Notes: generated by a model not told the origin, from the letters alone. A DNA stretch of 64,000 nucleotides from Basidiobolus meristosporus CBS 931.73 (GCA_002104905.1 MCFE01000046.1:133581-197580); one strand, 5' to 3'; shown: positions 9,101 through 64,000, numbered from the stretch's first letter. A program made the numbers and translations.

Positions 9101-10838
9101 CTGGCTTGTTTCCCATATATGCAGGCTTCAAGGTGCCTCAAATTAGCTGAGGGATCAATTTTTACTCCGGAAATCAGCTGATCTTTGATCATTTTGCGCA
9201 AATAATTTATTTGATGTGCCCAAATCTCCTGTGCTAAAGCATTGGTGTTTCTTCATTTCAGTTACTTATATTGGCTTCCAGATATGATGGAATATAAGTT
9301 AACTTGTACAGATTCCAATCTATGATACCCAAAACAATATGGGCACCATTTTGATCAATGATGTTGCATCCAGAATTGTCAAAGCTGAATTTGAGTCCTT
9401 CTGCTGTGGCCTTGCTTACAGATAATAGGTTCTTAGCTATTTCTGGTACATAAAGTACTTCTTTAAAGGTCAGTATATGGCTTCCTTCACTACTTCTTAG
9501 GCTTACTTGGATAGTTTCTTCTCCCACTACATCAAGTGCTCTATTGTCACCCATGAAAACCTTCCCAATTGGAATTTCTTGATATTGAGTAAAAAGATCT
9601 TTTTGGTGTGTAAAGTGTTGAGATGCTCCAGAGTCAATATACCATGCCTGAGAATTCTTGTTTGTGATGATATTTAGTGCAGATTTGAATAGTCTATCTT
9701 CAGTTGTTGCAGCATTTCCATATTCAGGCTTTTTCTGCTGACTATCCCTCTTTTTGAAGCATTGGTCTGATGTGTGTCCTTTCCTTTTAGAGTAATTGCA
9801 AAACAAGTTGCTATTGCCTTTAAAAGGCCCTGGGTACCTCCTTTGCTGGTTATTGTTGCTTATTAAAGCATTTTCTTCTTCCTTCTTGTTGGTGCTTGAT
9901 GTTCTTAATTCTTCATCAAAGAGCCTTCCATATACATAATTTAAGGTCAAATCTTCAGTACTGGACTCTAGGGCCAATACAAGGCCATGAAGCTTGTCTG
10001 TCAGGTTATTCAGGATGGTTACTTTCACATCCTCATCAGTAGTTGGTACACCCACAGATTTCATCTCATCTACCAGCAGGGCAATTATGTTAATTATATT
10101 TTTCATTTGTTCTCCTGGAAGCCTCTTGGGAGTAGGGAATTTTTGTCTCAGATACACTTTCTTTACAGCTGAACATGACTGGTAGGTGTCTTCTAATGCC
10201 TTCCAGGCATTCTTTGCTGTTTTTGCTCCTGAGCATTGAATTAGCAATTTGTCTTTAACATTAAGGCAAATGCTGTTAAGGGCACTTTGTTCTTTCTTCT
10301 GGTACTTTAAGGCTTCCTCTCCCATGCTTTTGGGAGGGCATTCTTCTCCCATGACAATATCCCAAATGCCTCTTTCTTTTAGCAGCATCTTCATCTTCAC
10401 CTTTCACACTTGGTAGTTAGATCCATCCAACTTTTCAGCAGAGGGAAAAATTCCAGTAATAGCAATAGGAGACATTGCAGAGTGTGACAGCTTGGGGCTC
10501 ATAACCTGTTGTAAGAGTCTTGGAGATATTGGAAGTGATTGGGAGAACAAGTAGATTATGTGGTTTTCACTAAATGATTTATTGAGTGTAAAAGTAGTAT
10601 TTATACTTTTACATGGTCTTGGCTTAACAAACAAGTAGAATTGGTTAAGGGAGGTCCCATGAACATGTGTGCAAAGTTTGGAACTGTTTGGACAACTTTG
10701 AGAATTTTCATGTTCTGGGTAAATATTCTAAGTAAATCCTAACAAGGAATTTGGTCAGTATTCTCCAGAATTTGAAGGTAATGATCTAAGTGACTAAGTT
10801 AGGTGAATATTTAGGTGGAATTACAAATTTCTACAACA
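6174..10838 (-). mobile_element. Full-length but frameshifted Ty1/copia element with both LTRs (6174-6522, 10507-10838), inserted into an opposite-orientation LTR
   Basis: gag with CCHC-like motif, protease WYIDSGASQH, IN HSDLCGP, RT and RNase H in copia order; PBS GGTTATGAGCCC (copia tRNAiMet-fragment type); TSD CCTAG/CCCAG; flanks rejoin as CAGGTACC(C)AGAACATG. Confidence 0.92.
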
Positions 10839-25852: not shown

Positions 25853-26186
25853 ACCACTCAGTAGTCGTTTTGCTCCGACTTCCGATCATAAACCTTTTGT
25901 GTAGCTTTCCTTTAAACTCGCAAAATAAAAACCTTCGGATAATTCGTCGTACCTTTCACATTGCATTCCACTATTATGTGCAAGGAGTGACCATCGTTGG
26001 CAATGGATGTGTAGTGCAACAGGATAGATATCAGCGCGAGCCGAGGAAACACAGACGCAGGTGGATTCGATTAATATTTTTGAGATTTTTATTTCACTGC
26101 ATTTAGAAAGATTGCTAGCCAAATCCAAAGCATCATATACTGGATGATTGGCACTAGCTCCATGTGCACATCGCGAAAGACTAGTA

Positions 26187-26848
26187 CTAACGGTTGCCTG
26201 CGAGGGGAAAAACATGGTTAGCAAGCTATCGATCACACGGGAAACGAACTGCAACATACTCTTGGCAACACGCTCCAACTCGTCCTTCTTCTTGATGGCG
26301 TAGCTGTTGGAGGAGCCCTTGGCAGCGTTGATGAGTTCATCAGCCAAGCACTCGGCGATGGTCTTGACGTTTCTGAAGGCAGACTCACGAGTGCCGGTGG
26401 TCAAGAGGTGAATGGCCTGGTTGACTCTTCTCAAAGGAGAAACATCAACGGCCTGTCTACGGACAGTACCGGAGCTACCGATACGGGTAGAGTCTTCACG
26501 TGGGCCACTGTTGATGATGGCGTCGATGAGGACTTGGATGGGGTTCTGGTCAGTGAGAAGGTTGATAATCTCAAAAGCGTGCTTGACAATGCGGACGGCC
26601 ATGAGCTTTTTGCCGTTGTTGCGACCGTGCATCATGAGGGAGTTGGTCAAACGCTCGACAATAGGGCATTGGGCCTTTCTGAACTTCTTGGTGGCGTATC
26701 TACCGGCGGTGTGAGGCAAGTAGACGGGGGCTCTCACTTGGAGGTAGTCGGTCAAAGAGATGTCCTTGATCTCAAGATCTTCGTAGGACCACTTGTTGAA
26801 GAGCTGAATGCCCTGAGCATCCCCAATGATTTCAGCAGGAAGAGCCAT
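26187..26848 (-). CDS. RPS5: 40S ribosomal protein S5 (uS7)
   Basis: [24 protein letters not shown]; intron before terminal SNR*. Confidence 0.97.
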
Positions 26849-27215
26849 GTTCCGGTATGCCTTCATAAGCAACTTGGTTAGTATGCGCGTAGAGGATGGA
26901 TGTACGGCGACTATGGCTGTTCATGTCAACTGTACCGTTAGCTAAAGGAAGTTAAACCCGACAGGAAAGGAGGATCCGGTCAGATTTCGCGGTGTATTTT
27001 GTTCATTGAGATTCCGATTTTTTTACCCAGCCAATCACTTAGGACTGCATCTCACCATCATCATCATCCTAGGCATTGTTCTTATTTCTCCGAGAGTCGG
27101 TAGACACAAGAGGCTTGTGCAACCACATGGGCTATATTTTACCTTGGGTCGAGTGATGAGTGATGAGTGATTGCACTGGTCTCGATTTCGTTTTTTCCTC
27201 TTCCGTTTTTCTGAC

Positions 27216-37827: not shown

Positions 37828-38854
37828 ATGATTCCAAGTGTTGCCTTCGTTAGCTTTGCCTTAATAAATATGGTTCCAGCGTATGCGCGCGTAAACGTAG
37901 ACGTATCATTGGCTACCCGCCATAAGGGATATATCCCGTATTTCGCAAAGCAGCGTGATCCGATACTTGGATCAAAAATGCGGAGCGGAGTACGGATCTT
38001 GCGGCGAGGGGTTGTGCTGTAGCGAGTACGGCTACTGCGGGTACACTTCGGATCATTGCGAAGCCGGCTGCCAGTCCCAGTACGGATCCTGCGACGATGG
38101 AACTATGGCCAAATTAATGACTGGCTGCACTGAGCCAGGGACCTTTGCCGTCACCTTTGACGATGGCCCAAGCGTGCTTACCTCCAGGTTGCTCGATTAT
38201 CTGGATTTCCAGGGCGTTAAAGCAACCTTTTTCATGAACGGACTAAATTGGAAAAACGCTGACACCAAAAATCCTATCCTCAGCATCTATCAGTTTGCAG
38301 ATGTGGTCCGGCGCATTTACGCCTCTGGCCACCAAATCTGCTCTCACACCTGGGGTCATGTTGATCTTATTACCGTCAACGAGTATAACGTGACTTACGA
38401 GCTGACCCGGCTGAACAGTGCCTTCGCCAACATCCTGGACAGGGTGCCTACCTGCGTGCGGCCACCATATGGCGATGCCGACACGACTGCCCTGAAGATT
38501 CTGAAGCGTATGGGTTACACGGTTGTTAACTGGAACGTGGATCCAGTGGACTGGAACCCGGCGAATACCATCGACCAAATGTTTGCCGAATATGTTGCGC
38601 AGACAGGAAGGACGGACCCAAAGGAGGGCAAATTCATCGCTCTTAACCATGACGTTTGGAACACCACGGCTGACTTCAGGCCAACAAATTACCCAAAAAC
38701 CATTCCTTTGGCGCAACGAGCTATCGAGTATCTGAAAGGCCGTGGATGGCGTCTTGTCAACCTTGCTGAATGTCTAGGAAGTGCGCCATTCTATCGCAGC
38801 CCAACACCATCGGATGAGAGCTGTGGTCCGACTGGATGCCCTTCAAATGACTAG
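37828..38854 (+). CDS. Hevein/CBM18 chitin-binding domain plus CE4 polysaccharide deacetylase
   Basis: Signal exon MIPSVAFVSFALINMV; CGAEYGSCGEGLCCSEYGYCG; TFDDGP, HTWGH, RPPYG, ALNHD. Confidence 0.92.
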
Positions 38855-47958: not shown

Positions 47959-49590
47959 TGTGGTAAAAACTTGTAATTCCACCTAAATATTCACTTGACT
48001 TAGTCACTTAGACAATCACCTACAAATCTTTGAGAATACTGACTAAATTCCATGTTGGAATATACTCAGAGTATTTTCACTAAAATATCATGTACCCAGA
48101 ACATGGAAATTATTAAAGTTGTCCAAACAGCCCCACACTTTGTGCACATGTTCATGGGACCTTCCTAAGTCTATTCTATGTGCTTTTCATGCTGGGATCA
48201 TGTAAAAGTATAAATATTACTTTACACTCAATAAATTATTAAGTGAGGACCACACAATCTACTTGTTCTCCCAATCACTTCCAATATCTCCAAGACACTT
48301 ACAGCAGGCTATATTCCCCAAGCTGTCACTCTCTGCAAAGTCTACCACTACTATTAATGGAATTTCTGTCCCTGCTGAAAAGTTGGATGGATCTGACCAC
48401 CATGTGTGGTAGATAACAATGAAAATCCTGTTACTAGAAAGTGGCCTTTGAGACATTGTCATGGGAGAGGAGATCCCTGCTAATGACATGGGAGAGGATT
48501 TATTCAAGTACCAGAAGAAAGTACAACATGCCCTCCACTGCATTTGACTTAATATCAAGGACAAATTGATAATTCAATGCACAAGTGCAAAAACAGCAAA
48601 GACTGCCTGAAAAGCACTAGAAGACACTAGCCAGTCATGTTCAGCTGCTAGGAAAATGTTTCCTAAGAGAAAACTCCTTACTACAAACATGCTCCCAGGA
48701 GATAAAATAAAAAATCTAATTAACAAAATTACCCTACTGGTGGATGTGATGGAATCTGTGGGCATACCAACAACTGATGAGGATATGATAGTTATCATGT
48801 TGAATAGCCTGACAGACAAGTCTCAGGGCTTTGTATCAGCCCTAGAGCTTGTAACTGAAGATTTGACCTTGAATTACATATGTGGAAGGCTCCTGGATGA
48901 AGAATTAAGAAAATCAAGTGCCAATAAGCTAGTAGAAGAAAATGCTTTAATAAGCAATGATAACCAACAAAGGAGGTACTCAAGACCCTTTAAAGACAAC
49001 AGCAACCTGTTTTGCAACTACTGTAAAGGGAAAGAACACACATTAGATGGGTGCTTCAAAAACAGAGACAATCAGCAAACAGAAGCCTCTACATGGAAAT
49101 ACCGTAACAACAGAAGATAAGCTATTTGCATCTACACTACATGTGACTACACACAAAGATTCTCAGATGTGGTACATTGACTTTGGAGCCTCTCAACACT
49201 TGAAACACCAAAAAAAAACATTTACCCAATATCAGGATACTCTAATCAAGAAGGTGTTCATGAGTGACAAAAGAACACTTGATGCAGCAGGAGAAGGGAC
49301 TTTCCAAGCAAACTTAGAAGCAGTGAAGGAAGCCATACACTAAGTGACCTTTAAAAAAGTACAATATGTACCAGAAATAGCCAAGAAACTACTATCTGTA
49401 AACAAGGCCACAGCAGAAGGATTTAGTTTCAGCTTTTGCAACTCTGGATGCAGGATCACTGATCCAAAGGTACCTATATCACTTCAGGTATCAGAGAACA
49501 CAATCTCTACAAGTTGACTTATATTCCTATCATATCTGGATGTCAATTGAAGTAACTTAGATGAAGAAATACCAATGCTTTGGTACAGGA
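47959..49590 (+). mobile_element. Copia 5' LTR (47959-48306) with gag/protease, truncated at GGTTAGG
   Basis: LTR family match; EKLDGS, WYIDFGASQH; ends at LWYRRLG. Confidence 0.88.
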
Positions 49591-49601
49591 GGTTAGGGGG
49601 G

Positions 49602-49710
49602 AGACAGTCACCAACTGGCAAAATCATTATTTCAGCTGAAACAGAGAAGCCAGCGCTACTGTTGTAGCTTTGATACAGAGTGTGTACTACTACTGTTGTA
49701 GCCTTGATAC
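49602..49710 (-). mobile_element. 3'-terminal fragment of LINE family A
   Basis: Near-identical to 59118-59205; fused to GGTTAGGGGG at 49591. Confidence 0.85.
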
Positions 49711-52394
49711 TGTTGTGAGTAGACACAAGGCAGGAGAGTAGAGCTAGGCAAGGCAGGGCCAGGAAAGGACTTAGGTGTGGATCAACAAGGAAAGGCTGGA
49801 TTATTCAAGCAAGCTGTTTATTCAAGCTGAGTTATCAGACTGAGGAATACATAAGGGGGGATAGGACAATATATACTTTTTGGCAATATAGATGCCAAGA
49901 GATATTGGCTAATACTGATGGCATTCTGGGGTGAGGCACAGTAGGTGTTCCAAGATAGAAATATACTTAAGAGCAGACTAGAATAACACATGGGGATATG
50001 TCAGGGGTCAGCTGACCATGTGACCTGGTCATGTGACATGCAAATACCATGTATGGTATTCAGCTACATATATTCCAAAGGGGAGCTTCCATAAAATGTT
50101 GCATTGAATGACATTGACTTGGAGCTTTGCAGAAGTTACTAAAATGTAGTAGTGATCCTAGTTTCTTATAGTCTAATTTGTCACAAGAATGGCTGGTAAC
50201 ATTTTTTCTTCTCCGGAGCCATACTGAATCTTCTTCATTAAGCTGGAGGCAAGGCCGGTGTTTGTTGTCTGCAAACTTCTTGTACCCCTGATGGGCTAAG
50301 GATAGTTCTTTCTTGAGTGTTACTAGGATTTCTATAATTGTTGATGCATGTTCAGCTGCATGGGGACTAATAGGGTTTGTTTGGATCTGAGTATCAAATT
50401 GGGGATGAAAACATTAACTTGCATAGAATGGGGTGAGACCAGTTACACTAAGACATGAGTTGTTGTAGGCAAATTCTACAGATATTAGCAACCGGGTCCA
50501 ATTGTCTTGCTCATAGTTGATATAGCACCAGAGGTATTGGTCAAGGATCTGGTTAATTCTCTCTGTCTGACCATCCTACTGAGGATGAAAAGTGGTTAGG
50601 AGCTTGATTTGCACACCAGATATTGCACAAAGTGTTTTCAGAATTTTGATATGAAATGGGCCCTCTATCAGATACAATGTCTCTTGGAAATACCATGCAG
50701 CCAGAAAATGCTCTTGATTACTAGGTGAGTAGTCTCCTTGGCGTCTACATTCTTGGAGCAGGAAATGAAGTGAGCCATCTTTGTGAGTCCATCAGCCACT
50801 ACCAGGATTGAGTTGAATTGGTAGGATTCTGCAAGGTTGGTTATGAAGTCCATTGAAATGGACTTCCATTGCTGGTCAGGAATTTGCAAGGGTTGAAGAA
50901 GTTAATATGGCTGGTGTATGGCAGATTTTGCACAATTACATGCATCACAGGATAGGAGGTACCCCTTAACATGGTATATCACCTTGGGCCACCAGAAGTC
51001 TCTCTTGGTTGCATTTATGGTTTTGGCGGTACCAAAATGTCCTGCAGCCATTGAATCATGGCACAAATGGATGATATCTAACTGAGTATCAAGGTCTGAG
51101 ACAAACAGTTGGTTCTGGTGATAGATAATGTCATTGACTAGATGTAGGTGCTAGAGGTTTGGGAACTTGAGTGGCAGGTCAGTGGGAGAAATGAGGTATT
51201 TCTTTATCATTGCCACCATGGAGTTGGTGGCTTAGCTGGTCTTGACTTTCTCAAGGAGTAAAGGAGCTATAATAAGGGAGGACTGGGTTGCAAGGAGTTC
51301 AAAATGTCTTTTGTTGAGTACAGGGCTTTTCATTTGCCAACAGGCATCATCCCTTCTTCAAGGGAATACTCTATTGTTCTGGAAAGGGCATCAGGATTTC
51401 CTTGTTTCAAACCTGGTCTATAGGTGATGACAAAGTCAAAGCTAGACAGCAAGAGGAACCATTTGGATTGTCTCTGGTTTAGCACCTTTGAGGTGGTAGA
51501 GTGCTCAGGGTTCTTGTGGTCCCAGAAGATCTTTATATTTTGGGCTGCACTATCAAGGTAGTGTCTCTGTTGTTCAAAGGCAACAAAAAGTGCAAGTAGC
51601 TCCTTGTCATAGATATTATAGTTTACTTCTGCTGCAATAAATTTCAAGAGTAAAGTGCAATAAGGTGTAGTACATTTTTGTTATCACACTGGGAAAGGAT
51701 GGCACCTAGGGCAGAATCAGTGGCAATGGTTTCCATGATGAAAGGTCTCCCAAGGTCAGGGTGGGCAAGCAATGGGGCACTCAAGAAGGACTTCTTGATA
51801 GAATCAAAGGACTCTGACTGCTCCTAATTCCAGGCAAAGGGCAGATTATACTGAGTGAGCTTTGTCAAGGGTGTGACTATCTTGGAGTAGTTGGCAATGA
51901 ATCTATGGTAAAAGTTGGCAAATCCAAGGAAGGATTGCACTTCTTTTCAGAACAGAAAGTTTCCTGGACTGGATGGCCGCTACTTTCTTGGGGTCCATTC
52001 TTGTTCCTTTAGAGCTTATGAGTTAGCCTAGGAACTCAATTTCTTTCAGGTTGAACTCTCATCTTTCCAGTTTTACATAGAGGCCAGCAGCGTCAAACTT
52101 GGTCAAGACTTTCTTCACATGGGAATGATGTTCTTCTTGAGTCTTGGAGTAGATCAGGATATCAACAAGGTAGATACCCATAAATTGGTCTAGGTATTCA
52201 AAGAATATGTCATTCATCAGTTATCAAAAGACAGCTGGAGCATTGGTAAGGCCAAATAGCATAACTCTATACTCCAAGTGACCATACTTGTTCTGAATGC
52301 AGTTTTTCATTCATCTCCAGGCTTGATTCCAACAAGGTCATAAGCTCCACTGAGATCAATTTTGGTAAATATTTTGGCAGAAGAGAGTAGATCC
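49711..52394 (-). mobile_element. Decayed Ty3/gypsy pol (RT, RNase H, IN) with candidate 3' LTR 49711-50038
   Basis: FGLTNAP, NYNIYDKELLA, YRPG...NPDALSR, SMDFITNL...VVADGLTKMAHFI; LTR boundaries low confidence. Confidence 0.85.
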
Positions 52395-53316
52395 TGTTGT
52401 AAAATTTGTAATTCTACCTAAATATTCTGCTAACATAGTCACTTAGAGCATTACCTACAAATCCTAGAAGATACTGACCAAACTCCTTGTTAGGATTTAC
52501 TTAGAATATTTTCACCACAATACCAGGCACCCAGAACATGAAAGTTCTCAAAGTTGTCAAAACAGCCCCAAACTTTGCACACATGCTCCTGGGACCTTCC
52601 TTTGCCTATTTAATGTGTAAAAGTATAAATATTGCTTTTACATTTGATAAATCATTAAGTGACAACCACATAATCTACTTGTCCTCCCAATCACTTCAAT
52701 ATCTCCAAGACTCTTACAACAAGTTATGAGCACCAAGCAGTCACTCTCTGCAATGTCCACTACTGCTATTACTGGAATTTTTCTCTCTTCTGAAAAGTTG
52801 AATGGATCTAACTAACAAATGTGCAAGGTGAAGATGAAGATGCTGTTACAAGAAAGAGGCCTTTGGAATGTAGTCATGGGAGAAGAATGCACTCCTAAAA
52901 ATGTGGGAGAGGAAGCCTTAAAGTACTAGAAGAAAGAACAAAGTGCCTTTAACTGCATTTGCCTTAATGTCAAGGACAAATTGCTAATTCAATGCTCAAG
53001 AGCAAAAATGGCAAAGAATGCCTGGAAGGCATTAGAAGACACCTACCAGTCATGTTCAGCTGCTAAGAAAATGTATCTGAGACAAAAATTCTTTACTACA
53101 AAGATGCAGCCAGGAGAAGAAATGAAAAATCTAATTAGCAGAATTACCCTGCAGGTAGATGAAATGGAATCTGTGAGTGTACCATCTACTGATGAGGATG
53201 TGATAATTACCAACCTGAATAGCCTGACAGACATGTTTAAGGGCCTTGTATCAGCCCTAAAGTCTAGAACTGAGGATTTGGCCTTAAATTACAAATATGG
53301 AAGGCTCCTGAATGAA
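52395..53316 (+). mobile_element. Copia 5' LTR (52395-52721), PBS and gag fragment, truncated at a telomere-like GGGTTAGG
   Basis: AGTTATGAGCACC PBS-like; gag YQSCSAAKKMYLRQKF; ends at YGRLLNE. Confidence 0.88.
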
Positions 53317-53459
53317 GGGTTAGGATAAGGGGGGAGAGAGTCACCAACAGGTGAAATCATTATTTCAGTTGATACAAAGAAGCCAGCACTACTGTTGTAG
53401 CATTGATACAAGAGTGTGTAGCTGAGGGGAACTTGTAGGTAAGTTTACAAGAAGTGATG

Positions 53460-54687
53460 TGTTGTGTTGTATTATGATTAGTTTGGGGCTTGTTCTACAA
53501 TGTAGAGGCTAATCAACAATATACAACAACTTCCAGTATGCTAATACTGCAATAGGTTATTGGGAGTTTGATATACCAATAGAAGATATAACTTTCACTA
53601 ATTTCCTCAATCTTAGGCTCAAAATATACTGTAGGCAGTGTTTATCACTTCTACAGCAGTGTTCTGACCTTGTCTTGACTAATGGGCTTATTTACTTTTA
53701 TAGTAACTTTTCTTTATTTGGAAGTCACTTTCCTTTCTGAGAAAATATTTCCTAATATGGAAATTCTGAACTCCCCTTTAGCCTAAAGGGGTGTGTTGTA
53801 GAAGTCTCTAAAGGGGTCTTTAGACCTAAAGGGGTGTCTAAAGGGGTGTCTTTAGAGTAAAGGGGCTTCTTGTAGTGGTCTCTAAAGTGGACTTTACACT
53901 AAAGGGGTGCCTAAAGGGGCTTCTTTAGAGTAAAGGGGTTTCTTAAAGGGGTCTCTAAAGGGGTCTTTAGACTAAAGGGGTGTCTTTAGAGTAAAGGGGT
54001 TTCTTAGAGGGGACTTTTCCAACAGAAAAGTGGTAGTTTCTTGTAGAACTTAGATTGGATTCTTGTGAGCTTTGCAGTCTCTTTACTGATGTAGTACCAA
54101 TCAAAGTCAGAATACTCAACAGTGCAAGTGATGCAGGGGAAGTCTTATAACCTTTAAACTTGTAATTGTAGTGTGGAGATTCTGGAAAGAGAGGCTCCTT
54201 TATTTTTCAGCTGGGGAAGTCATATATATGAAAATTTTGAAGGATCAAAGTTTTTGGGCGATTGCGCAAGCAATACACATGATACAAAGCTAAAATTTTG
54301 CAGTGGCACAGATCGGACATAGGCGCAGCACCTGTGAAAATTTCACGAGATTTGATTGGCTGGTTCAAAAGTTACACGCGATTAAAGTCACTATAGTAAT
54401 CCTAGCAATAAGGCATAGTATATATAATAGTTGGACTTTTTTGGTCATAACTCCTTAAGTACTGCTTCAAATGAGCTGTAATTTGAAACATGTGTTGGCT
54501 ACTACATGTTCTGTATGACATAATATTCTTGGGTGGATTGCTTGTCATGGTTTGGAGCATTTGCTCATCAAAGTTGGAAATTCATGATTTTTCACTTTTG
54601 TGTTACAATAGCAAAAAGCAAAATAAAGAAATGAGTGCAATATTGGTTTAGAGATATTGTAGTAATGGAATACTTTCCATTACCACA
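53460..54687. mobile_element. 1228-bp solo-LTR-like insertion with 4-bp TSD GATG and an internal repeat array
   Basis: TG...CA termini; GATG at 53456-53459 and 54688-54691; CCAAT, TATA and AATAAA-like signals inside. Confidence 0.75.
53781..54010. repeat. Tandem array of (C)TAAAGGGG / CTTTAG units
   Basis: More than a dozen TAAAGGGG-type units interleaved with the complementary CTTTAG. Confidence 0.85.
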
Positions 54688-56300
54688 GATGATAGTTCTT
54701 CAGTGCTCAAGACACTGTTCAGGGGGAAGGAGGGTTGCAAGAGGTGTAAGAATGATTTGTGAAAAACATTAATGAGGGGAATATGATAAGGATTGATATT
54801 GATCATAAAGGGAGAGTGCTGCCTCAGATATTGCTGCTCAAGGTCTGTCAAGTACTTCAGGTAGGCCAGCTTGAGTTTTTCTGACTGCAGAATATAGTGA
54901 GCAAACTTCTTGACTTCAGGATCTCCAAGTATAGTTCTCCAGCAGGAGCCAGGTGTAGTGTGGTGTGTTCTCTTCCAGGACTTGATCAGTGGGTTACTGC
55001 AGTGGTGAAGTCTGAGATATAATCTGGTTCTAAGGTAGAGTAGTCTGATCTTGTAGGGTAGAAACCCAAAAGCACCAAGAATAGCATGTCTGTAGGGGCA
55101 TTCAGGCAGATGAGGCACCAGGGATGTAATGCACCAGACTGCAAACTTGTCAAGTTTAGTGCAGTCTCTAGAAGTGAGAGAGAGAAGTGGTAAACCAAAT
55201 TCCAGGACAGGGAAGACAAACTGCTTGAGTAGGAGGAGGCAGCTGGGAGCTGAAGCTGTAGGAGGAGTTACAGCCAGTAGCTTGTGGAGTGCTTGTCTTG
55301 CCAGGATAATTCTCTTCTTCAGGTGTGCTCCAGAGACTAGTCCAGTAGGAAGGAAAGGAAAGCAAAGATATGTAGCAGAAGCTTGAGCAGGTAGAGTGCA
55401 GTTGTCTAAGTTGATAGGACAACCCAAAGGTACAGTCTTGGCAATAGAAAGCTGGATATTATTCTTCTCCAGATACTTGTGGATGGACAGGGATTCTTGT
55501 TGCAAGTTGGAGGAGGATATTCTGATGTCATCAGCAAAGAGTGTAACCAAGCAGTCAGCTAAGAGTCCTGGGAAGTCATTCAGGAAGATGGCAAACAGTA
55601 TAGGACCAAGCACAGAGCCTTGAACCACTCCATTAGGAACTGAGAACACTGGTGATTGCCCACTTGGGTGTAGGTGTTATAGTAAGGGCTAGGAAAAGGT
55701 TAGAAGAGCAGGGGGTCTGGGGGACGCAGACCCCTAGAGAATAAAAAAGCAGGGGGTTTGGGGGATGCAATCCCCCATACTGCTTCCATATTCTTTAAAT
55801 TCCTGTTGAATTACTTTTCTCTCATTCTTGGTTCTGGTCCCTTAGGGTTAGAATTCCTCCTCCTAAACCTTATCACCCTAACCATAAATATTTTTACCTT
55901 ACAATAGGCACATTGTCTGCTCATATAGTGGGTATGTCTGGACCAATATTTATCTCCCTATACTGTCCATATGCTCTGTATAATTCTTGATGACTATTTA
56001 ATTAATAAATTGTTACTTTTAATGTATATCTAATAATTAATGGGAATCATCCCAAACTGGCCACAATCCCATATTTTGATAAGCTTTGGGCACCATAAAT
56101 TGTGCAGCCCTAATATGATAAAAAAATTCATGGCCAATACAAATTTTCTGTAGCCTGATTGCTTTTGCCAAATATAAAGTGTATCCCAAAGTTCAATATA
56201 AATTATGGCTATAATAGAAACTTTATTTGACACCATTGCAACTACTGCTTGTGTTCTATGCGCACATGTATCCTGCAGGAATTGTAAAACTTAGCCACGT

Positions 56301-57372
56301 TGTGGTGGTGTATAAGTCCAAGGGAGAGATACGTCCAACACTTCTCAAGTGTTTTGTGTGTGGGGTGTTCACTGGGTGCAATAACCTCTGGCAAAAGCTT
56401 GCTAGGAATACTTGGGTTCTGTCTCTAATCTAATGTGAAGGGGAATAAAGCCACAAGCTTGTCAAGGGAAAACTATTGAGCTACAATCCCCAACTTAGTT
56501 GGCGTCTTAACAAAAGTATGTGCTGGGTTCAGCGTCCTTTGAGATGACAATGTACTAAAGCTTCCAAAGTCAAAACAACTGTAAACTCCACCAGCAGGGA
56601 CTTGATAAGAATGCAGCTTTGGTTTATAGTTACAAAGACAGAAAAGTATCTTTGCCTGTACAAGAACAAACTTGGGAAAGAATCAAATATAATAAAAGAT
56701 ACCTACTCTGAGTATTCCTCACAAGTAGTGCCTCCAAGGTCAGTTGGCTGTCAGCGCGGTTTCCTGGGAGTGTCCTGTGGTCTAGGGTTGGAAGTTCAGG
56801 TAGCAGCAGGTAGCAGTGATCACACTAATCAACAAGTCGGTATATTGATAAAAGGGATGATGATTTATTGTTGAGGGATAGCCTCCCTTATATACTTTTC
56901 TTCACTGGCTAAGTGATTACTAATCATGATGTTCCAGAAGGTTCCGGAGTTCAATAGAAATCTTAATGACATCAGAATGACCTAAGAATGTTCTAAGTAG
57001 GTGCCGGAAGGTTCTAAGAGGCACAGCACATCCAACCAATCAGGAATCAGTATTCTGAAACCTGTGTAACATGGGGATACCATATATGGTATGGAAATGG
57101 TAGGGATGGTGACACGGGTTGATCATGTGTCACAGGTACTGGCGCGGGTACTTGCCTAATATAGAAGCACTTGTAACTAGTAATCTTACATAAAGTGAGG
57201 GGTAACTTATGCAATAAGGTAAGCAGGTGTGATAGTCAACCGGCTTATGGGATAGTACTGATTGGGTAAGACAAATGGGATAAAACTAAAATGAGTGTAG
57301 TAGGGATATAGGGAAGTAGAAAATAAGGGAATGAGCACATCTGTTAGTGGGTGTCACTGTCACCCCACTACA
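56301..57372. mobile_element. Solo LTR, younger copy of 1919-2985, TSD ACGT
   Basis: ACGT at 56297-56300 and 57373-57376; TGTGG...CTACA. Confidence 0.88.
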
Positions 57373-57498
57373 ACGTGGTACAAAAGTGCTTTTATTTTTC
57401 ATCATGATAGTTTTACATGAGTTCCTGTTGCATTTTGAAAGTACACAGTAGCCATACCCCAACAGGTTTTAAGGATGTCCACTAGCTACGTCTACTTG

Positions 57499-58074
57499 TG
57501 TCTAACCAGAGCCATCAATCATCAGCCACGCAATACTGAAATGCTTTTAGGGTTAGGGGAGGAAAGTCACCAAGTGGTGAAATCTTTATTTACTTATGAC
57601 AAGTATCTAAAGAAGCCAAGTTAATCTGAAGTAATTCCTAGAAAGCTAGGTCTGAGAGATATCTTCCTGGTAAGCCAGGACTGAGAGTTGAGAAGCTGAG
57701 TGGTACTATATTTCCTAGTTAGCTAGGTCTGAGAGAGGTTTCCTGGAAAGCCAGGCCTGAGAAGTGAGAATCTGAATATATCTGAGCTAAGTTATACTGG
57801 TTTGCAGTAGCTGAATTGTGGCCGGAATGGCCAGTAGACTGGGGGAACTGAGATGAATTTCTGGGCAATCACTGGCCAAATTTACTAGGCAAATCTGGCC
57901 AATTAGCATTTCAAGGATTTCAGCCAATCAGAGCCTTTACTTTGCCTGATGGTTGATCAAGCCATCTCCCAATGAGCACACATCAATTTATTAATCAAAT
58001 TTTGCTGGATCCAGGATTTGAACCCACCACCATGGGTATGGAAGGGTTAGGGATAACCACAAGGCTAAGTGTTC
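57499..58074 (-). mobile_element. tRNA-derived SINE (~575 bp) with LINE-type 3' tail
   Basis: Minus 5' end GAACACT-TAGCCTTGTGGTTA (A box)...GGGTTCAAATCC (B box); internal ~75-bp direct repeat; tail AAATAAAGATTTCACCACTTGGTGACTTTCCTCCCC fused to TAACCCTAA. Confidence 0.8.
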
Positions 58075-58080
58075 TTAGGG

Positions 58081-59105
58081 GAGGGAAAGTCACCAAGTTG
58101 GTGAAATCTTTATTTGAGTTAAGAACTAATCTAGGTACAAATAAAGAAGCCAATTAAGAGGTCTAGAACCTCTCTAATAAGTAATCTAATTTATGTTTTG
58201 TTTCATCTCTAATGTTTGTTTCAATAAAGTAAAGCTCATCAGGGGTAAACATAAAATTCAGGGGTTTTGGGGGAAGTACCAATTGTAGATGTTTCTGATC
58301 AATATAATCCAAGACTGGAACCCAGCCTGGGATTAGGTGTAGTAGGAAAGGTGTGTGGACTTGTAAGTAGCTCTGCCACATAGATCTTAGATGGTCCTGA
58401 GCCAGTAGTCTTGGTTTTTCAGCTTTTTGAAGTTTTGAAGCAAGCTCTGTTACTACAGCAGAGCCAACTAGGGTGTGCCAGCAAGAAGATTTCAGGGAGG
58501 AGTTAGATTGAAGCCATTGTTTGATGGAGGGGTTATGTGATTTCTGAAGTTTGACTAGGAAGGAAGCACAAAGATAGACCATTTGGATTTGGTATGGGTA
58601 GAAGCCAAAGGCTCCATTAGTTGCATGGATATAGGGAGATACTGGAAGATAAGGTACCAAGGATCTGATACACTGATGGAGAAATTTATCCAGGCGGTGA
58701 AGTTCTCTGGAGGTTAGGGGTATAATGTGGAGACCAAATTCAAGTACCGGCAGTACATACTGCTTCAGAAGTATAGGGATCTTTTGAATTGGAGTGTCTG
58801 GAGTGACTACTACCAGAAGCTTTTTGAGAGCCTGCTGGGCAAGACGGATCCTATTATTCAGGTGGAGCTTTGAGTCAATCCCATGTTGACAAAATGGCAG
58901 ACCTAGATATATTGCAGTTTGTTGTGGCAGAATGCTAGTGTTCTGTATAGTTGTAGTGCATCCAATTGGGACTGTCTTGGAAATTGAGAGTGAGAGGTTG
59001 TTGGCAGCCAAGTACTTCTCAATGATGGCAGTGTCTGCTATGGGATTAGGAGTAGCAATCTTGATATCATCCGCATAGAGAGTTAGTAGTGGATAGGGAG
59101 AGTCT
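58081..59105 (-). mobile_element. 5'-truncated LINE family B (RT C-terminal half, open frame)
   Basis: LTLYADDI...LSISKTVPIG...YLGLPF; homologous to but diverged from family A; same 3' module. Confidence 0.88.
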
Positions 59106-59171
59106 GGGTTAGGGGGGAGACAGTCACCAACAGGTGAAATCTTTATTTCAGTTGAAACAAAGAAGCCAGCG

Positions 59172-61940
59172 CTACTGTTGTAGCTTTGATACAAGAGTGT
59201 GTAGCTGAGGGGAATTTGTAGGTAAGTTAATAAGAAGTGATGATAGTTCTTCAGTGCTCAAGACACTGTTCAGTGGGAAGGGGGGTAGCAAGAGAGGTAA
59301 GAATGACTTGTGAACAACATTAATGAGGGGAATGTGATAAGGATTGATATTCATCATAAAGGGAGTGTGCTGCTGCAGATATTGCTGCCAAAGGTCTGTC
59401 AAGTACTTCAGGTAGGCCAGCTTGGGTTTTTCTGACTGCAGAATATAGTGAGCAAACTTCTTGACTTCAGGATCTCCAAGTATAGTTCTCCAGCAGGAGC
59501 CAGGTGTTGTGTGGTGTGTTCTCTTCCAGGCCTTAATCAGTGGGTTGTTGCAGTTGTGAAGTCTGAGGTATAATCTGGTTCTAAGGTAGAGAAGTCTGAT
59601 CTTATAGGGCATAAACCCAAAAGCACCAAGAATAGCATGTCTGTAGGGGCATTCAGGCAAATGAGGCACCAAGGAGGTAATGCACCATACTGCAAACTTG
59701 TCAAGCTTAGTGCAGTCTCTAGAAGTAAGAGAGAGAAGTGGTAAGCCAAATTCCAGGACAGGGAAGACAAACTGCTTGAGTAGAAGGAGGCAGCTGGGAG
59801 CTGAAGTTGTAGGAGGAGTAACAGCCAGTAGCTTGTGGAGTGCCTGTCTTGCCAGGATAATTCTCTTCTTCAGGTGTGCTCCAGAGTCTAGTCCAGTAGG
59901 AAGGAAAGGAAAGCCAAGATATGTAGCAGAAACCTGAGCAGGTAGAGTGGAGTTCTCCAAGTTGATGGGAGAGCCCAAAGGTACTGTCTTTGCAATGGAA
60001 AGCTGGAGATTATTCTTCTGCAGATACTGGTGGATGGTCTGGGAGTCTTGTTGCACATTGGAGGAGGATATTCTGATGTCATCAGCAAAGAGAGTAACCA
60101 GGCAGTCAGCTGAGAGTCTTGGGAAATCATTCAGGAAGATGGCAAACAGTATAGGACCAAGCACAGAGCCTTGAACCACTCCATTAGGAACTGAGAACAC
60201 AGCTGATTGCTCACTTGGGTGCAGAATTCTTGCTTGTGGATCCAGAAACAGAGACCTGACAAGGAGGGTGAGAGAGGTACTGGAGAAGCATTGCAACTTG
60301 GACCAAAGCAGATTTCTGTCAACTGAATCAAAGGCCTTAGTAATATCAAACAGAACAGAGGGATACTTGCACTGGAGAGAGTGATCTTGGCTAAGTATGA
60401 CTGCATATTCCAAGGAGAGGCCAGGAACAAAGCCAAACTGTGCAGGATGAAACTTGAGGGAGTCAGAGTAGAGCTCCTGAGCAAGCAGAAGCTCAAACAC
60501 CTTTCTGCAGGTGGGCAGCAGAGATATTGGCCTGTAGGAGCTAGGATCCAGGTGCTTTCCTTTACCCTTGTACAGTGGCAGAACATTTGCAAAGGACCAT
60601 TCCTCAGGAGTAGAAAGCTGGGCTGAGCATTGCTGAAACAGTGGAAGCAGAAGTGCAGACATGGCCTTGGTACTAGTCTTCAGAAGCTCATAGGAGATTG
60701 TGTCCACACCTGGAGCAGTAGAGTTGGGAAGCCTCTTGAGCACATTATGGATTCTCCTTTGATCAAGTGCAAGTGGGATGGGCAGAGTCTTGAAGTCAGG
60801 ATGAAAGCCAGGAGTTGAGTACTGCTGTGTAGAGAAGAAGATGTTAGCCAGCTGTTCTGTTGAAGGTAACTTCCTGGAAGAGGGCCTCATTGCCCTGTAG
60901 AGTCTTGATACTGTTCTTGTTATAGAGTTGGAAGATTGCAGAGGCAAGGAACTCATAATATGATCCCAGAGCTGAGTATGCAGAGTGTGGTGAATTGCCT
61001 TGGAGTGGTGTATTGCTGTCAGGAGGAGTTTCTCTGTTTTTGGGTTAGGGAAACTCAGGTAGCTTTGTTGCAGGGCTGAAACAATGGATTCCCATTTTCT
61101 TGAGGTAACAGCAGTAGTCTTGCATGGCAGTGAGAGGGAGGCAGACACCAGAATCAGATGCTTCACAAAGAGCCAGGCATAGTTGAGATCATCTGGCAGA
61201 GAAAGTAGCAAACTGGCAAGCTTCAAGTAGTTCCCAAAGTCTTTCTTCTGATTCTTGGTAGCTTTGTGGGTGAGAACAGTAAGTTTTGGCAGCTTCTTCT
61301 TCACAACTGGTTGCATAGAAAGGGACCAGGCTGGATGGTCAGAGGCTCTCAAGGATCCTAGCTCAGCTCCAGAGAATTGCTTAACTTCATTCACAAAGTA
61401 GAGGGCAGCAGCAGAAGGGCAGATCCAGTCAACACATCTTTTCTCAGATTGAGCACCTAGTGCTAGCAGGTGGCTTCCTCTCAGGAAGTTCAGTAGGAAT
61501 GTAGACCTTGGCTTCATTCTTGCAGTCAGAGTAGTCTTGTTCTCAGGATGGGGAATGTTGAGATCTCCAAGCAAGATAACAGGTGTTGATATAGATTGTT
61601 GGTATTGCTGAACCTTCTGGCATATAACTTGCACTTCTTGAAGGGCAAGACTTGGAGGCAGATAGCAGAGCACCAGACTGATAGTTGGCAACTGGAGAGC
61701 AGCACAGTAAGGGGAGTAAAGAGGAACACAGAGCTGAGGAGTATTGATGGTAGAAGAGATGAAGCAGATAGAGGAGGTATTCTTTGTTCTAGGAGTAGAA
61801 AAGCAATATAGATTAGTCAAAAGTATAGAGGGTAGCTGGACATCAATCAAACACAGGAGGGAAAATCTTGAAAGAAGTCTTTCTAGAGTTGGTCTTGATG
61901 GCTGTATGCTGTTGCAGTTAAGCAACAGAACTTCAGGTAG
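59172..61940 (-). CDS. LINE ORF2: AP endonuclease plus reverse transcriptase; no ATG before the EN core
   Basis: EN LNCN, CYLPP, GDLN, VDWI, SDH; RT APGVD, YRPISLL, QFGF, DITKAFDSV, GVVQGSVLGP, FADD; no RNase H or CCHC seen. Confidence 0.95.
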   Translation of the reverse strand, partial: LPEVLLLNCNSIQPSRPTLERLLSRFSLLCLIDVQLPSILLTNLYCFSTPRTKNTSSICFISSTINTPQLCVPLYSPYCAALQLPTISLVLCYLPPSLALQEVQVICQKVQQYQQSISTPVILLGDLNIPHPENKTTLTARMKPRSTFLLNFLRGSHLLALGAQSEKRCVDWICPSAAALYFVNEVKQFSGAELGSLRASDHPAWSLSMQPVVKKKLPKLTVLTHKATKNQKKDFGNYLKLASLLLSLPDDLNYAWLFVKHLILVSASLSLPCKTTAVTSRKWESIVSALQQSYLSFPNPKTEKLLLTAIHHSKAIHHTLHTQLWDHIMSSLPLQSSNSITRTVSRLYRAMRPSSRKLPSTEQLANIFFSTQQYSTPGFHPDFKTLPIPLALDQRRIHNVLKRLPNSTAPGVDTISYELLKTSTKAMSALLLPLFQQCSAQLSTPEEWSFANVLPLYKGKGKHLDPSSYRPISLLPTCRKVFELLLAQELYSDSLKFHPAQFGFVPGLSLEYAVILSQDHSLQCKYPSVLFDITKAFDSVDRNLLWSKLQCFSSTSLTLLVRSLFLDPQARILHPSEQSAVFSVPNGVVQGSVLGPILFAIFLNDFPRLSADCLVTLFADDIRISSSNVQQDSQTIHQYLQKNNLQLSIAKTVPLGSPINLENSTLPAQVSATYLGFPFLPTGLDSGAHLKKRIILARQALHKLLAVTPPTTSAPSCLLLLKQFVFPVLEFGLPLLSLTSRDCTKLDKFAVWCITSLVPHLPECPYRHAILGAFGFMPYKIRLLYLRTRLYLRLHNCNNPLIKAWKRTHHTTPGSCWRTILGDPEVKKFAHYILQSEKPKLAYLKYLTDLWQQYLQQHTPFMMNINPYHIPLINVVHKSFLPLLLPPFPLNSVLSTEELSSLLINLPTNSPQLHTLVSKLQQ

Positions 61941-63449
61941 TCAGGCAGAGGTTGTAGCTTCTTCAGAGGCAGCATTGATAATGTGACCTGCAGAGTCCCA
62001 GAGCTCTTCAAATGGTGCATCACTTAAGTCAGCAAGGAGGGAAATGGCATGATTCTTGAGGAAGTATGCCACATCATAGGAGGGGGCTTGTCTCTTGATG
62101 GCAGCAAAGAAAGACAGAATGGCAACATGGGCTGGAGGCTTGTTGAACAGTAGAGAGTCAGAGGATTCAGATTCTTCAGGCACTATCTTGAAGTCAGTTT
62201 TCAGCCAGTTAAGGTTCTTCTCCACAAAGGTAACAAATGGGTCAGCAATGTTTTGGTCTAGGATAACCTCCAGAATCTTCCCTTTTCTCCAGGCCAGGTT
62301 GACAATTCTTGAGAGCTGAATATTGCATGCCTTGAGTGCTTTCCTGATGTTGGAAATGGGAGTCCAGGGAACTTGCTTCAAGTACACCACAGTCCAGGTA
62401 GAAGCTGGTGGTAGGTTTGCTGGGGGCTTGTAAGTCCTTCTGTGTTGCAATGGAGCTGCAGTAGTCAGATTGGAGTCCACATTCTCAGTAGAAGGTTTTC
62501 TTGATGTGTCTTGCTGAATAGTACTGGAGCTGGATGTGCTGATAATTCTTGCTAGAACCTTGCCTGCATAAGTCTGAGGTATAGCTGAGGTGACTGTAGA
62601 GGTGGTGGCAGCTGGTGCAGGTGGAGAGGCAGAGACTAAAGCAGGAACTGAGGTCACCTGGGAGAAGGCAGTGGAAGCAGGTTTTCTGGGAGGAACAGAG
62701 TTCACTATCCAGTTGTTCTGTAAAACACTGGAGTAGCTTTTCTGTGGAACAGGATCTTGCTCTTGAACAGGAACAGAAGCAGGAGGCTGGGGCTGAGCAG
62801 TAGTGGTAAGGCAGTGGCACTCCAAGGAAGCTTTTTGCAAGGCATCTCTGGCAGTTTTCAGGGCAGTATTGGCTTCATTCTTGAGCTTCTTGCATTGGGC
62901 ATCCAGTCTCTTGTTTTCAATTGCCAGGGCAGTATTGGCAGCCTCTAAATCAGCAATTCTCTTCTCAATTGCAAGGAATCTCTTAAGAAATGCATCAGTA
63001 GAAGTGCTGGCATCTGGGAGAGCAGTGGCAGGAATAGACTCCATTGAGAGTGGGCTTCTTGGAGGCAAGGAAAGTGGACTGGCAGATTCAGGCACAAAAG
63101 GAGATATCCTGGCAGGAGGAGAAGGAGTATCCAAGGCAGTAACAGAGGCAATTCTTGTTGGTGAAGCAGCAGCAGGGGAGGCAAGCCTGTTCAGAAACTG
63201 GGCAGGAGAGAGTGCTTGAGGAGAGGGAGTCTTCAGCTTGCCAAGCATGTCTTCCATCAGAGTGATACCAATATTCCTGGTGCATTTGCAGAGAAAAGTA
63301 AGCTTCCTGAGTCTGCCAGCTCTTCCATTCCTTCTGATAGTTCCTTTGTTTCCACAGTTGGGGCAAGAAATCTTCTTGACAGACTTGTCAAAGCAATCAA
63401 GAACCTTCCTTTCAGGTGTAGTGGGCTCCTGTTGAGGTTTTGGTGGCAT
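61941..63449 (-). CDS. LINE ORF1 (gag-like): Zn ribbon, S/P linker, coiled coil, RRM-like C-terminal domain
   Basis: First ATG gives MPPKPQQ; CPNCG...FLCKC; heptads RFLAIEKRIADLEAAN; SYSSV/TYAGK motifs. Confidence 0.88.
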   Translation of the reverse strand: MPPKPQQEPTTPERKVLDCFDKSVKKISCPNCGNKGTIRRNGRAGRLRKLTFLCKCTRNIGITLMEDMLGKLKTPSPQALSPAQFLNRLASPAAASPTRIASVTALDTPSPPARISPFVPESASPLSLPPRSPLSMESIPATALPDASTSTDAFLKRFLAIEKRIADLEAANTALAIENKRLDAQCKKLKNEANTALKTARDALQKASLECHCLTTTAQPQPPASVPVQEQDPVPQKSYSSVLQNNWIVNSVPPRKPASTAFSQVTSVPALVSASPPAPAATTSTVTSAIPQTYAGKVLARIISTSSSSTIQQDTSRKPSTENVDSNLTTAAPLQHRRTYKPPANLPPASTWTVVYLKQVPWTPISNIRKALKACNIQLSRIVNLAWRKGKILEVILDQNIADPFVTFVEKNLNWLKTDFKIVPEESESSDSLLFNKPPAHVAILSFFAAIKRQAPSYDVAYFLKNHAISLLADLSDAPFEELWDSAGHIINAASEEATTSA

Positions 63450-63518
63450 ATCCAGAGTTTCAGCTTCAAATTTCAATTTTTGAGATTTTTGGGTGATTTT
63501 TGATGGGCGGGATCAAAA

Positions 63519-63532
63519 TTAGGGTTAGGGTT
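63519..63532 (+). repeat. Short internal telomeric tract TTAGGGTTAGGGTT
   Basis: Direct reading. Confidence 0.9.
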
Positions 63533-63674
63533 GCGCGCTGTGACTGCTTTTTACGATCGCAAGGTCAGAACCTAGGAAAAAATAGAAATAGTTAGTGAAG
63601 GTGATTTAATGGATGGATGGATGGATTCGGAGTCAGATTCAATCAAAAAATCAAATCGTTGACTAATTTAAAGA

Positions 63675-63720
63675 GGGTTAGGGTTAGGGTTAGGGCTAGG
63701 GTTAGGGGTTAGGGTTAGGG
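63675..63720 (+). repeat. Proximal telomeric tract (~7.5 repeats, with CTAGGG and TTAGGGG variants)
   Basis: Direct reading. Confidence 0.95.
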
Positions 63721-63844
63721 GGAGGAAAGTCACCAAGTGGTGAAATCTTTATTTACTTATGACAAGTATCTAAAGAAGCCAAGTTAATCTGAAGTAATTC
63801 CTAGAAAGCTAGGTCTGAGAGATATCTTCCTGGTAAGCCAGGTC
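63721..63844 (-). mobile_element. 5'-truncated SINE 3' end embedded within the telomere
   Basis: Near-identical to ~57499-57679; TTAGGG tracts on both sides. Confidence 0.93.
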
Positions 63845-64000
63845 TTAGGGTTAGGGTTAGGGTTAGGGTTAGGGTTAGGGTTAGGGTTAGGGTTAGGGTT
63901 AGGGTTAGGGTTAGGGTTAGGGTTAGGGTTAGGGTTAGGGTTAGGGTTAGGGTTAGGGTTAGGGTTAGGGTTAGGGTTAGGGTTAGGGTTAGGGTTAGGG
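63845..64000 (+). repeat. Telomere (TTAGGG)26, running to the window end
   Basis: Perfect repeats with the G-rich strand 5'->3' toward the end. Confidence 0.99.

Follow-up and report, generated by a model that had tools for sequence, protein, structure and literature searches.

Telomere-associated retrotransposons are central to ideas on the relationship between telomerase and retroelements. The known types are long interspersed nuclear elements (LINEs) of the insect R1 and Jockey clades, CRE-clade elements carrying a restriction-like nuclease, and nuclease-less Penelope-like elements. Telomeric retroelements named in one survey are SART/TRAS (R1 clade), HeT-A/TART/TAHRE (Jockey), Zepp and Tx1-1_ACar (L1-like), GilM/GilT and MoTeR (CRE) and Athena (Penelope-like) (PMC10088271). 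In Drosophila, attachment is by poly(A) and the elements take the place of telomerase entirely (PMC5537684, PMC10088271), and SART1 initiates accurately only with a long poly(A) tail and needs at least three TTAGG units (PMC7265360). The endonuclease-deficient Penelope-like elements Athena (rotifers) and Coprina (fungi and others) carry reverse-complement telomeric repeats at their 3' ends, through which they are described as attaching to G-overhangs (PMC8557442), and the fungal elements MoTeR, FoTeR and Cnl1 possess a C-terminal restriction-like nuclease and cluster with CRE/SLACS/CZAR (PMC12857005). Away from telomeres, the stringent-type LINEs of zebrafish form pairs with short interspersed nuclear elements (SINEs) through a common 3' stem-loop (PMC4176376). 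Here we analyse the right end of contig C768 (197580 bp) of the early-diverging fungus Basidiobolus meristosporus CBS 931.73, taken as a window of 64,000 nucleotides (MCFE01000046.1:133581-197580, assembly GCA_002104905.1). In the outermost ~14 kb of this window, two LINE families and a small SINE-like element are stacked in a single direction, without poly(A), and a terminal (TTAGGG)26 tract closes the stack.

Our favoured reading, to which we give a probability of about 0.58, is that these are telomere-dedicated retrotransposons without long terminal repeats (LTRs), whose cDNA would be primed on the terminal 3' end of the chromosome with the help of the element's own tail; copying straight onto chromosome ends is the most likely route of their addition. 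The elements carry a common 3' module, which reads AGTCACCAA-N(2-5)-GGTGAAATCTTTATTT on the G-strand and has 1515 exact matches in the genome (1398 on the plus and 117 on the minus strand) against none for the reversed control. Placement relative to contig ends was scored for the first 100 of these 1515 matches listed, which fall on 29 contigs. All 100 lie within 22.2 kb of the contig end that is faced by the 5' end of the element. When only contigs above 100 kb are considered, which number 11 and span 2.15 Mb, the 37 modules that they carry all fall in this zone too, at a median distance of 4 kb from the faced end (log10 P of about -19, each contig being counted as one event). The left end of contig C479 is a mirror image of this arrangement, with CCCTAA repeats first and minus-strand modules behind them. 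The initial annotation of the stretch, made from the sequence alone, had proposed a chromosome-end system of SINEs and LINEs with an apurinic/apyrimidinic endonuclease (APE), arranged head to tail with the 5' ends toward the tip; the distances of the placed copies from the contig ends, together with the predicted APE fold described below, bear this out. The strand bias of the module (1398 against 117) places the arrays overwhelmingly at right-hand contig ends, a preference that may come from how the contigs were oriented. Many contig ends of the Basidiobolus assembly carry such arrays, and many of these ends hold copies that are 99-100% identical. The system looks active because it comprises more than 1500 copies with near-identical young members.

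From the tip inwards, the window is composed of the following features:

63845-64000, plus strand: terminal telomere tract (TTAGGG)26, reaching the end of contig C768.
63716-63844, minus strand: 3' fragment of SINE-B, ~129 bp, 5'-truncated, 98% identical to 57556-57689, with the terminal telomere tract directly on top.
63675-63715, plus strand: internal telomere tract of ~7 units with the variants CTAGGG and TTAGGGG, between the LINE-A 5' end and the SINE fragment.
59112-63674, minus strand: full-length LINE-A, 4.56 kb, with 5' untranslated region (UTR), open reading frame (ORF) 1, UGA, ORF2 (predicted APE and reverse transcriptase, RT) and 3' UTR.
59106-59111, plus strand: junction filler GGGTTA, from the truncated LINE-C to the LINE-A 3' end.
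58078-59105, minus strand: LINE-C, the second family, 3' 1.03 kb, truncated within the RT at the YADD box.
57556-58074, minus strand: SINE-B, full length, 519 bp, non-coding.
57547-57555, plus strand: junction filler TTAGGGTTA, preceding the SINE-B 3' end.
55674-57546, strand not assigned: unclassified subtelomeric repeat block without the 3' module, also found near the left end of contig C80.
53329-55673, minus strand: older LINE-A 3' part, 93-94% identical, in two pieces (53329-53459 and 54688-55673).
53460-54687: 1.2-kb insertion splitting the older LINE-A copy.
53317-53328: degenerate filler GGGTTAGGATAA, preceding the older LINE-A 3' part.
49591-49686, minus strand: the oldest LINE-A remnant, a 3' tail piece of ~95 bp (92.6% identical) with GGTTA as filler, adjoining a truncated copia-like gag/pol fragment.

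Six module-bearing 3' ends are read on the plus strand, all in one orientation and each after TTAGG(G)-like bases. The elements are encoded on the minus strand and their 5' ends therefore point to the tip, facing the terminal (TTAGGG)26. The junctions consist of GGTTA, G6 and AGACAGTCACC at 49591, GGGTTAGGATAA and G6 at 53317, TTAGGGTTA and G4 at 57547, TTA and G4 at 58075, GGGTTA and G6 at 59106, and ~7 telomere units followed by G5 at 63675-63715. This last tract is among the few that are too long for the tail alone to account for. The initial annotation had recognised all six fused ends and their common orientation, the one given at 57487 lying in fact at 57547, one 60-base line further on. 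It had also described two LINE families and a SINE, which correspond to LINE-A, LINE-C (45% identical in amino acids) and the non-coding 519-bp element with the common module, and had reported neither poly(A) nor target-site duplications: indeed, no poly(A)/T run occurs at any window junction, and no target-site duplication is definable there.

To characterise what separates successive copies, 92 junctions from the window and 21 other loci were compared. The trinucleotide TTA directly precedes the G-run in 77 of them (84%), as compared to 2.5% expected from base composition. The number of perfect telomere-phase bases ranges from 0 to 9 in 86/92 junctions (93%) and falls sharply above 9; 15 of the 92 have only 0-2 such bases, right after arbitrary non-telomeric sequence, and six have at least 11, with a maximum of 39. 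Upstream of the junctions lies either an arbitrary internal position of an earlier LINE or SINE or an exact 5' end, and these precise 5' ends finish in GG or GGG on the G-strand, which provides microhomology. Since arbitrary truncated sequence is followed by no more than 9 telomere-phase bases in 93% of the junctions, TTAGGG at most junctions is mostly the element's own CCCUAA tail (...CCCCCC-UAACCCUAA) in copied form and not a telomerase tract. Most simply, cDNA synthesis would begin at a point of the tail that varies from copy to copy, with 0-9 nucleotides paired to the DNA end. Longer tracts are found, for example, at 63675-63715 and in loci L020 (39 nt) and L018 (25 nt), and these few tracts, like the terminal cap, need telomerase or repeat slippage.

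These figures change the picture that had been drawn from the window. The TTAGG(G) had been taken for a telomerase tract on which the elements landed, a view that 86 of 92 junctions with 0-9 telomere-phase bases contradict. Alternation with telomerase capping, proposed at the same time, accounts for the terminal cap and for the six junctions with 11 bases or more, a minority of the set. The converse possibility, in which GGTTAGG belongs to the element and has nothing to do with target choice, is half right: the bases are mostly the element's own tail, but the target is still clearly the chromosome end.

Other observations bear on separate events and on the order of addition. Truncation points and element order differ at every end sampled, on which ground block duplication was rejected as the main source of the arrays. 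Read-level contigs from the source sample contain many distinct LINE-A-to-LINE-A joints, in which different LINE-A positions are connected back to 59107-59122 with 1-22 telomere-like letters between the copies, and word depth along LINE-A in the reads of this sample rises ~8-fold from the 5' to the 3' end. Stacked ultra-short copies of 16 nt and 120 nt were also observed; they fit abortive terminal cDNAs. LINE-A copies of one locus were compared pairwise with the young reference, and the copy nearer the tip resembled it more closely in 24 of 27 pairs (permutation p = 4e-4, window excluded). This age gradient favours sequential terminal addition over random insertion within the array.

Similar features are kept outside this assembly. 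The relatives found in databases form one isolated family with 43-80% amino-acid identity overall, the next matches reaching at most 37% in the RT. Their contigs, which come from seven other public samples, keep the module, and CCCTA(ACCC...) follows it in seven of the eight relative contigs that reach the 3' end. Three contigs (L046, L047 and L051) run on into further truncated copies, and L044 corresponds exactly to one full-length element, with CCC... at one boundary and ...CCCTAACCCTAACC at the other. It should be noted that the start and the end of L047 (Logan ERR14042393) overlap (…TAAATTAACTAAA), so that this relative was assembled as a tandem head-to-tail unit joined via CCCCCTAACCCTT. 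In a run with the same species label, the element copies are merely 80-90% similar.

The structure of LINE-A was examined in its full-length copy. Its 5' end (sense CCCTCTTTAAATTAGTC...) is confirmed by identical precise 5' ends at junctions in two other contigs, L003 and L006. The 5' UTR (63453-63674) contains CCCTAACCCTAA at 63519-63530. ORF1 (61941-63452, ~503 amino acids) has an N-terminal Cys-rich motif and a coiled coil, and no Pfam family matched the protein. ORF2 (59172-61940) follows in the same frame after a single UGA-CUA, with the UGA at 61941-61943; its first Met lies deep within the nuclease domain and no start codon is nearby. The arrangement ...SA-UGA-CU(A/C)-L..LLLNC is kept in three relatives of 43-63% identity, whose in-frame UGA sites (L043:2112-2117, L044:1666-1671 and L045:905-910) are followed by CUA or CUC. 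Given the single frame, the single UGA, the lack of a nearby start and the conservation of this arrangement, ORF2 is probably produced by stop-codon readthrough, which would give an ORF1-ORF2 fusion.

The RT of ORF2 is of the LINE type (Pfam RVT_1, E = 2.6e-25), its best PDB sequence matches being to human LINE-1 ORF2p (E = 5e-13), and its nearest matches in protein databases outside the family are 30-37% identical. The N-terminal 240 residues are predicted to adopt an APE/EEP nuclease fold (AlphaFold2 predicted local distance difference test score 80.5). The top PDB match of this model in Foldseek is the TRAS1 telomere-specific endonuclease (1wdu, E = 8e-10), with human APE1 nearly equal. The Pfam match to the domain is weak (E = 0.0022, below the cutoff) and its sequence profile has no match in the PDB, the fold emerging from structure prediction. 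LINE-A keeps the nuclease residues N, Y, GDxN, D and SDH, which vary little or not at all across the family: D126, N128, H131, D171, D201 and H202 are invariant, and the metal-binding Glu position is Asp in all members. No Pfam nuclease match was obtained in the ~220 residues after the RT, where a C-terminal restriction-enzyme-like nuclease was looked for. LINE-A has no LTRs, is frequently 5'-truncated and shows a 3'-biased copy number, and its 3' UTR carries the conserved module and ends in C6. With its RT and predicted nuclease domain, LINE-A is assigned to the APE-type LINEs.

The two other elements are linked to LINE-A by the 3' module. The LINE-C ORF is 45% identical in amino acids to residues 609-901 of LINE-A ORF2, and LINE-C has the same module with a different loop. 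SINE-B and the LINEs have only the 3' 30-45 nt in common, the SINE-B tail being closest to that of LINE-C (97% identical over 32 nt). The 71 SINE-B matches scored, out of 425 candidates, are mostly 96-99% identical. Its head includes an A-box-like TAGCCTTGTGG and a B-box-like GGTTCAAATCC, which by eye match 10/11 consensus positions each and are ~43 nt apart; no tRNA was called there by ARAGORN or by the Rfam scan. Being short, non-coding and multicopy, with a 3' tail in common with a LINE, SINE-B is a SINE-like element. Both SINE-B and LINE-A also hold a telomere-repeat motif on their sense strand, CCCTAACCC in the SINE head (58045-58053) and CCCTAACCCTAA in the LINE-A 5' UTR; telomere proteins could bind these internal motifs, or telomerase could use them as seeds. 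The system would contain two or more autonomous LINE families, accompanied by a non-coding SINE-like passenger with the same 3' RNA module.

In its extended G-strand form the module reads G(4-6)-AG(A/G)(C/A)A-GTCACCAA-loop-GGTGAAATCTTTATTT, and the RNA would display AAUAAA, a conserved CACC/GGUG hairpin and a C-run. With up to one mismatch allowed, TTAGGGTTAGGG is present at 36 sites of the window, where 0.31 would be expected. Given seven 3' ends as input, RNAalifold returned the invariant CACC/GGUG hairpin alone and detected no compensatory change; by eye, L051 has one compensated outer pair (TCACC/GGTGA versus ACACC/GGTGT). A hairpin structure at the 3' end is plausible. An Rfam scan of 40000-64000 with E up to 1 detected no hammerhead ribozyme and no other known RNA.

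Several observations concern the surroundings of the elements. The insertion at 53460-54687 holds a tandem array (53750-54020) with units of ~31-42 bp of the form CTAAAGGGGTGTCTTTAGAG. The repeat block 55674-57546 recurs close to the left end of C80 with its orientation to the tip unchanged, and the final 170 bp of the block form a tandem repeat there. The block may represent either a further telomere-associated element or a piece of subtelomere that was duplicated. Truncated copia-like gag/pol and gypsy-like pol fragments lie between the oldest LINE tails (48656-49590, 50200-52400, 52700-53316 and 9258-10400), and two of the copia-like fragments stop exactly at the start of a LINE tail. GC skew on the plus (G) strand increases steadily toward the tip, from 0.12 to 0.27 over 48001-64000, so the cDNA strand of the elements resembles the telomeric G-strand in being rich in G. 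Ordinary genes are found 25-38 kb from the chromosome end, namely those for ribosomal protein uS7/S5 and for a chitin deacetylase with a chitin-binding domain (25886-26872 and 37955-38854), the latter belonging to a large Basidiobolus family of paralogues with members in B. meristosporus CBS 931.73 and B. ranarum.

According to the end-priming reading, the LINE protein would bind the 3' module of the RNA, and 0-9 nt of the tail would pair with any 3' end exposed at the chromosome terminus, be it a telomeric G-overhang or an eroded end within the previous element. The paired end would then prime reverse transcription, the cDNA lengthening the G-strand, and repeated rounds would build one-way head-to-tail stacks with the youngest copies outermost. 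Telomerase would still cap the outermost copy and occasionally add tracts between copies. We infer free-end addition as in arrays of the HeT-A/TART type, for which the nuclease would be dispensable in most events.

Several points weigh against this account. The placed sample is 100 of the 1515 modules, and rare interstitial copies may occur. The age gradient of the SINE copies is not significant (14/21 pairs, p = 0.13). The tail and the 3' end of the element RNA are read from DNA. The APE-fold domain is under purifying selection, and its conservation argues that nicking matters for at least some events. Finally, junctions of this kind would also arise if the nuclease mediated insertion into the short telomere-like fillers that separate existing copies.

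This last point leads to the alternative that survives best, nuclease-dependent and sequence-specific insertion as in Bombyx TRAS/SART: the APE would nick the G-strand in double-stranded TTAGGG (the terminal tract or the short fillers), the CCCUAA tail would anneal, and ordinary target-primed reverse transcription would follow. The conservation of the fold and catalytic residues across the family speaks for such a mechanism, and TRAS1 endonuclease is the best structural match of the model (1wdu, E = 8e-10), with APE1 scoring nearly the same. TTA before the G-run in 84% of the junctions and the copies inside longer tracts (63675-63715, 39 nt in L020 and 25 nt in L018) agree with it as well. However, random nicks in a tract of at least 150 bp should leave long proximal tracts far more often than is observed, since 93% of the junctions have at most 9 telomere-phase bases and 15/92 have 0-2. 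Nor is the youngest-outermost gradient of LINE-A expected if insertion takes place anywhere in the array. The Asp at the metal-binding Glu position in all family members is a further difficulty, and so is the absence of poly(A), unlike in TRAS/SART, SART1 needing a long poly(A) tail (PMC7265360). We regard this mechanism as a serious rival, although less probable than end-priming.

It is highly unlikely that subtelomeric recombination or break-induced replication is the main spreader, with retrotransposition rare and the fillers mere relics. Such exchange could explain copies 99-100% identical at many ends, as well as the presence of the module-free block 55674-57546 at another chromosome end in the same orientation. 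It does not explain why element order and truncation points vary from one sampled array to the next, nor why read-level contigs hold dozens of distinct joints between LINEs; read depth is 3'-biased in the manner typical of reverse transcription, and the ORFs are intact with the in-frame UGA arrangement conserved. That this is an ordinary dispersed LINE family, with a 3' CCCTAA microsatellite by chance and a terminal site due to coincidence or assembly artefact, is scarcely credible: many LINEs end in short repeats and not in poly(A), and most fillers are short enough to be element-encoded, but all of the first 100 listed modules lie near the faced contig end with one polarity, the arrays pass into genuine terminal telomere tracts both at the C479 left end and in the window, and contigs from other samples show stacking of this kind.

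If the end-priming reading holds, it can be extended to a second, retrotransposon-based system of end maintenance beside telomerase, in which the APE-LINEs and their dedicated SINE would rebuild eroded ends by tail-primed reverse transcription, the CCCTAACCC motifs (LINE 5' UTR and SINE head) and the G-rich cDNA strand would recruit telomere proteins or telomerase, and the arrays would be a functional part of the cap. We consider this extension rather unlikely. Were it true, it would constitute an independent fungal parallel to Drosophila and Bombyx and an intermediate between telomerase-only and retrotransposon-only telomeres. The activity of the elements, if real, makes it testable whether a nuclease-bearing LINE uses natural chromosome ends and whether the elements help the host to keep its ends.

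Comparison with the described systems reveals partial likeness to each. TRAS/SART elements (R1 clade, Bombyx/Tribolium) resemble those of Basidiobolus as telomere-only LINEs with ORF1 and both APE and RT, in hosts that keep telomerase-type repeats, and the predicted nuclease fold is nearest to the TRAS1 endonuclease. TRAS1 primes its cDNA from the G-strand, which would give the same polarity. TRAS/SART, however, are insect elements with poly(A) tails that occupy fixed positions with telomeric repeats on both sides, whereas the fungal elements have a telomere-complementary tail, show no A/T run at any junction and follow non-telomeric sequence with at most 9 telomere-phase bases in 86/92 cases. 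Drosophila HeT-A/TART/TAHRE share with them one-way head-to-tail stacks at the very end, variable 5' truncation, addition that is seemingly independent of the end sequence, and autonomous together with non-autonomous partners; the polarity, terminal position and age gradient of HeT-A/TART-type arrays are all present. By contrast, the Drosophila elements replace the telomerase repeats and have oligo(A) junctions, and their non-autonomous partner is a gag-only LINE, whereas Basidiobolus has a (TTAGGG)26 cap, telomere-like junctions that are not A-rich, and a SINE-like partner with putative RNA polymerase III-type boxes.

Athena and Coprina are close in another respect, as the copies are terminal and the 3' ends bear reverse-complement telomeric repeats, ...CCCCCC-TAACCC(TAA) in window copies and relatives. 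They differ by a Penelope/TERT-like RT, the lack of a nuclease and the presence of hammerhead motifs, compared to the LINE-type RT, predicted APE domain and lack of any Rfam ribozyme match in Basidiobolus. MoTeR, FoTeR and Cnl1 are likewise fungal non-LTR elements tied to telomere repeats; the Basidiobolus elements are distinguished from them by two ORFs and a predicted N-terminal APE domain. As for the stringent-type LINE/SINE pairs, SINE-B has only the 3' module, with its conserved hairpin, in common with its LINE partners, which is a hallmark of stringent-type tail recognition (PMC4176376). Those pairs are dispersed in the genome, whereas the Basidiobolus pair, SINE-like passenger included, is at chromosome ends in every copy placed.

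The initial annotation knew of no such family in this kind of fungus, and our literature search agrees: it returned no description of Basidiobolus telomere elements, no paper on a telomere-specific SINE and no report of fungal LINEs that possess a nuclease and are added directly to chromosome ends; every fungal non-LTR element of telomeres treated in PMC12857005 has the restriction-like nuclease. A two-ORF APE LINE devoid of poly(A), a telomere-complementary tail, a SINE-like passenger at chromosome ends and TTAGGG caps are not found together in this literature. Taken together, the Basidiobolus elements depart from each of the known systems compared in at least one defining feature, and unite the tail trick of the Penelope-like elements, the protein architecture of TRAS/SART and the array form of the Drosophila telomeric elements.

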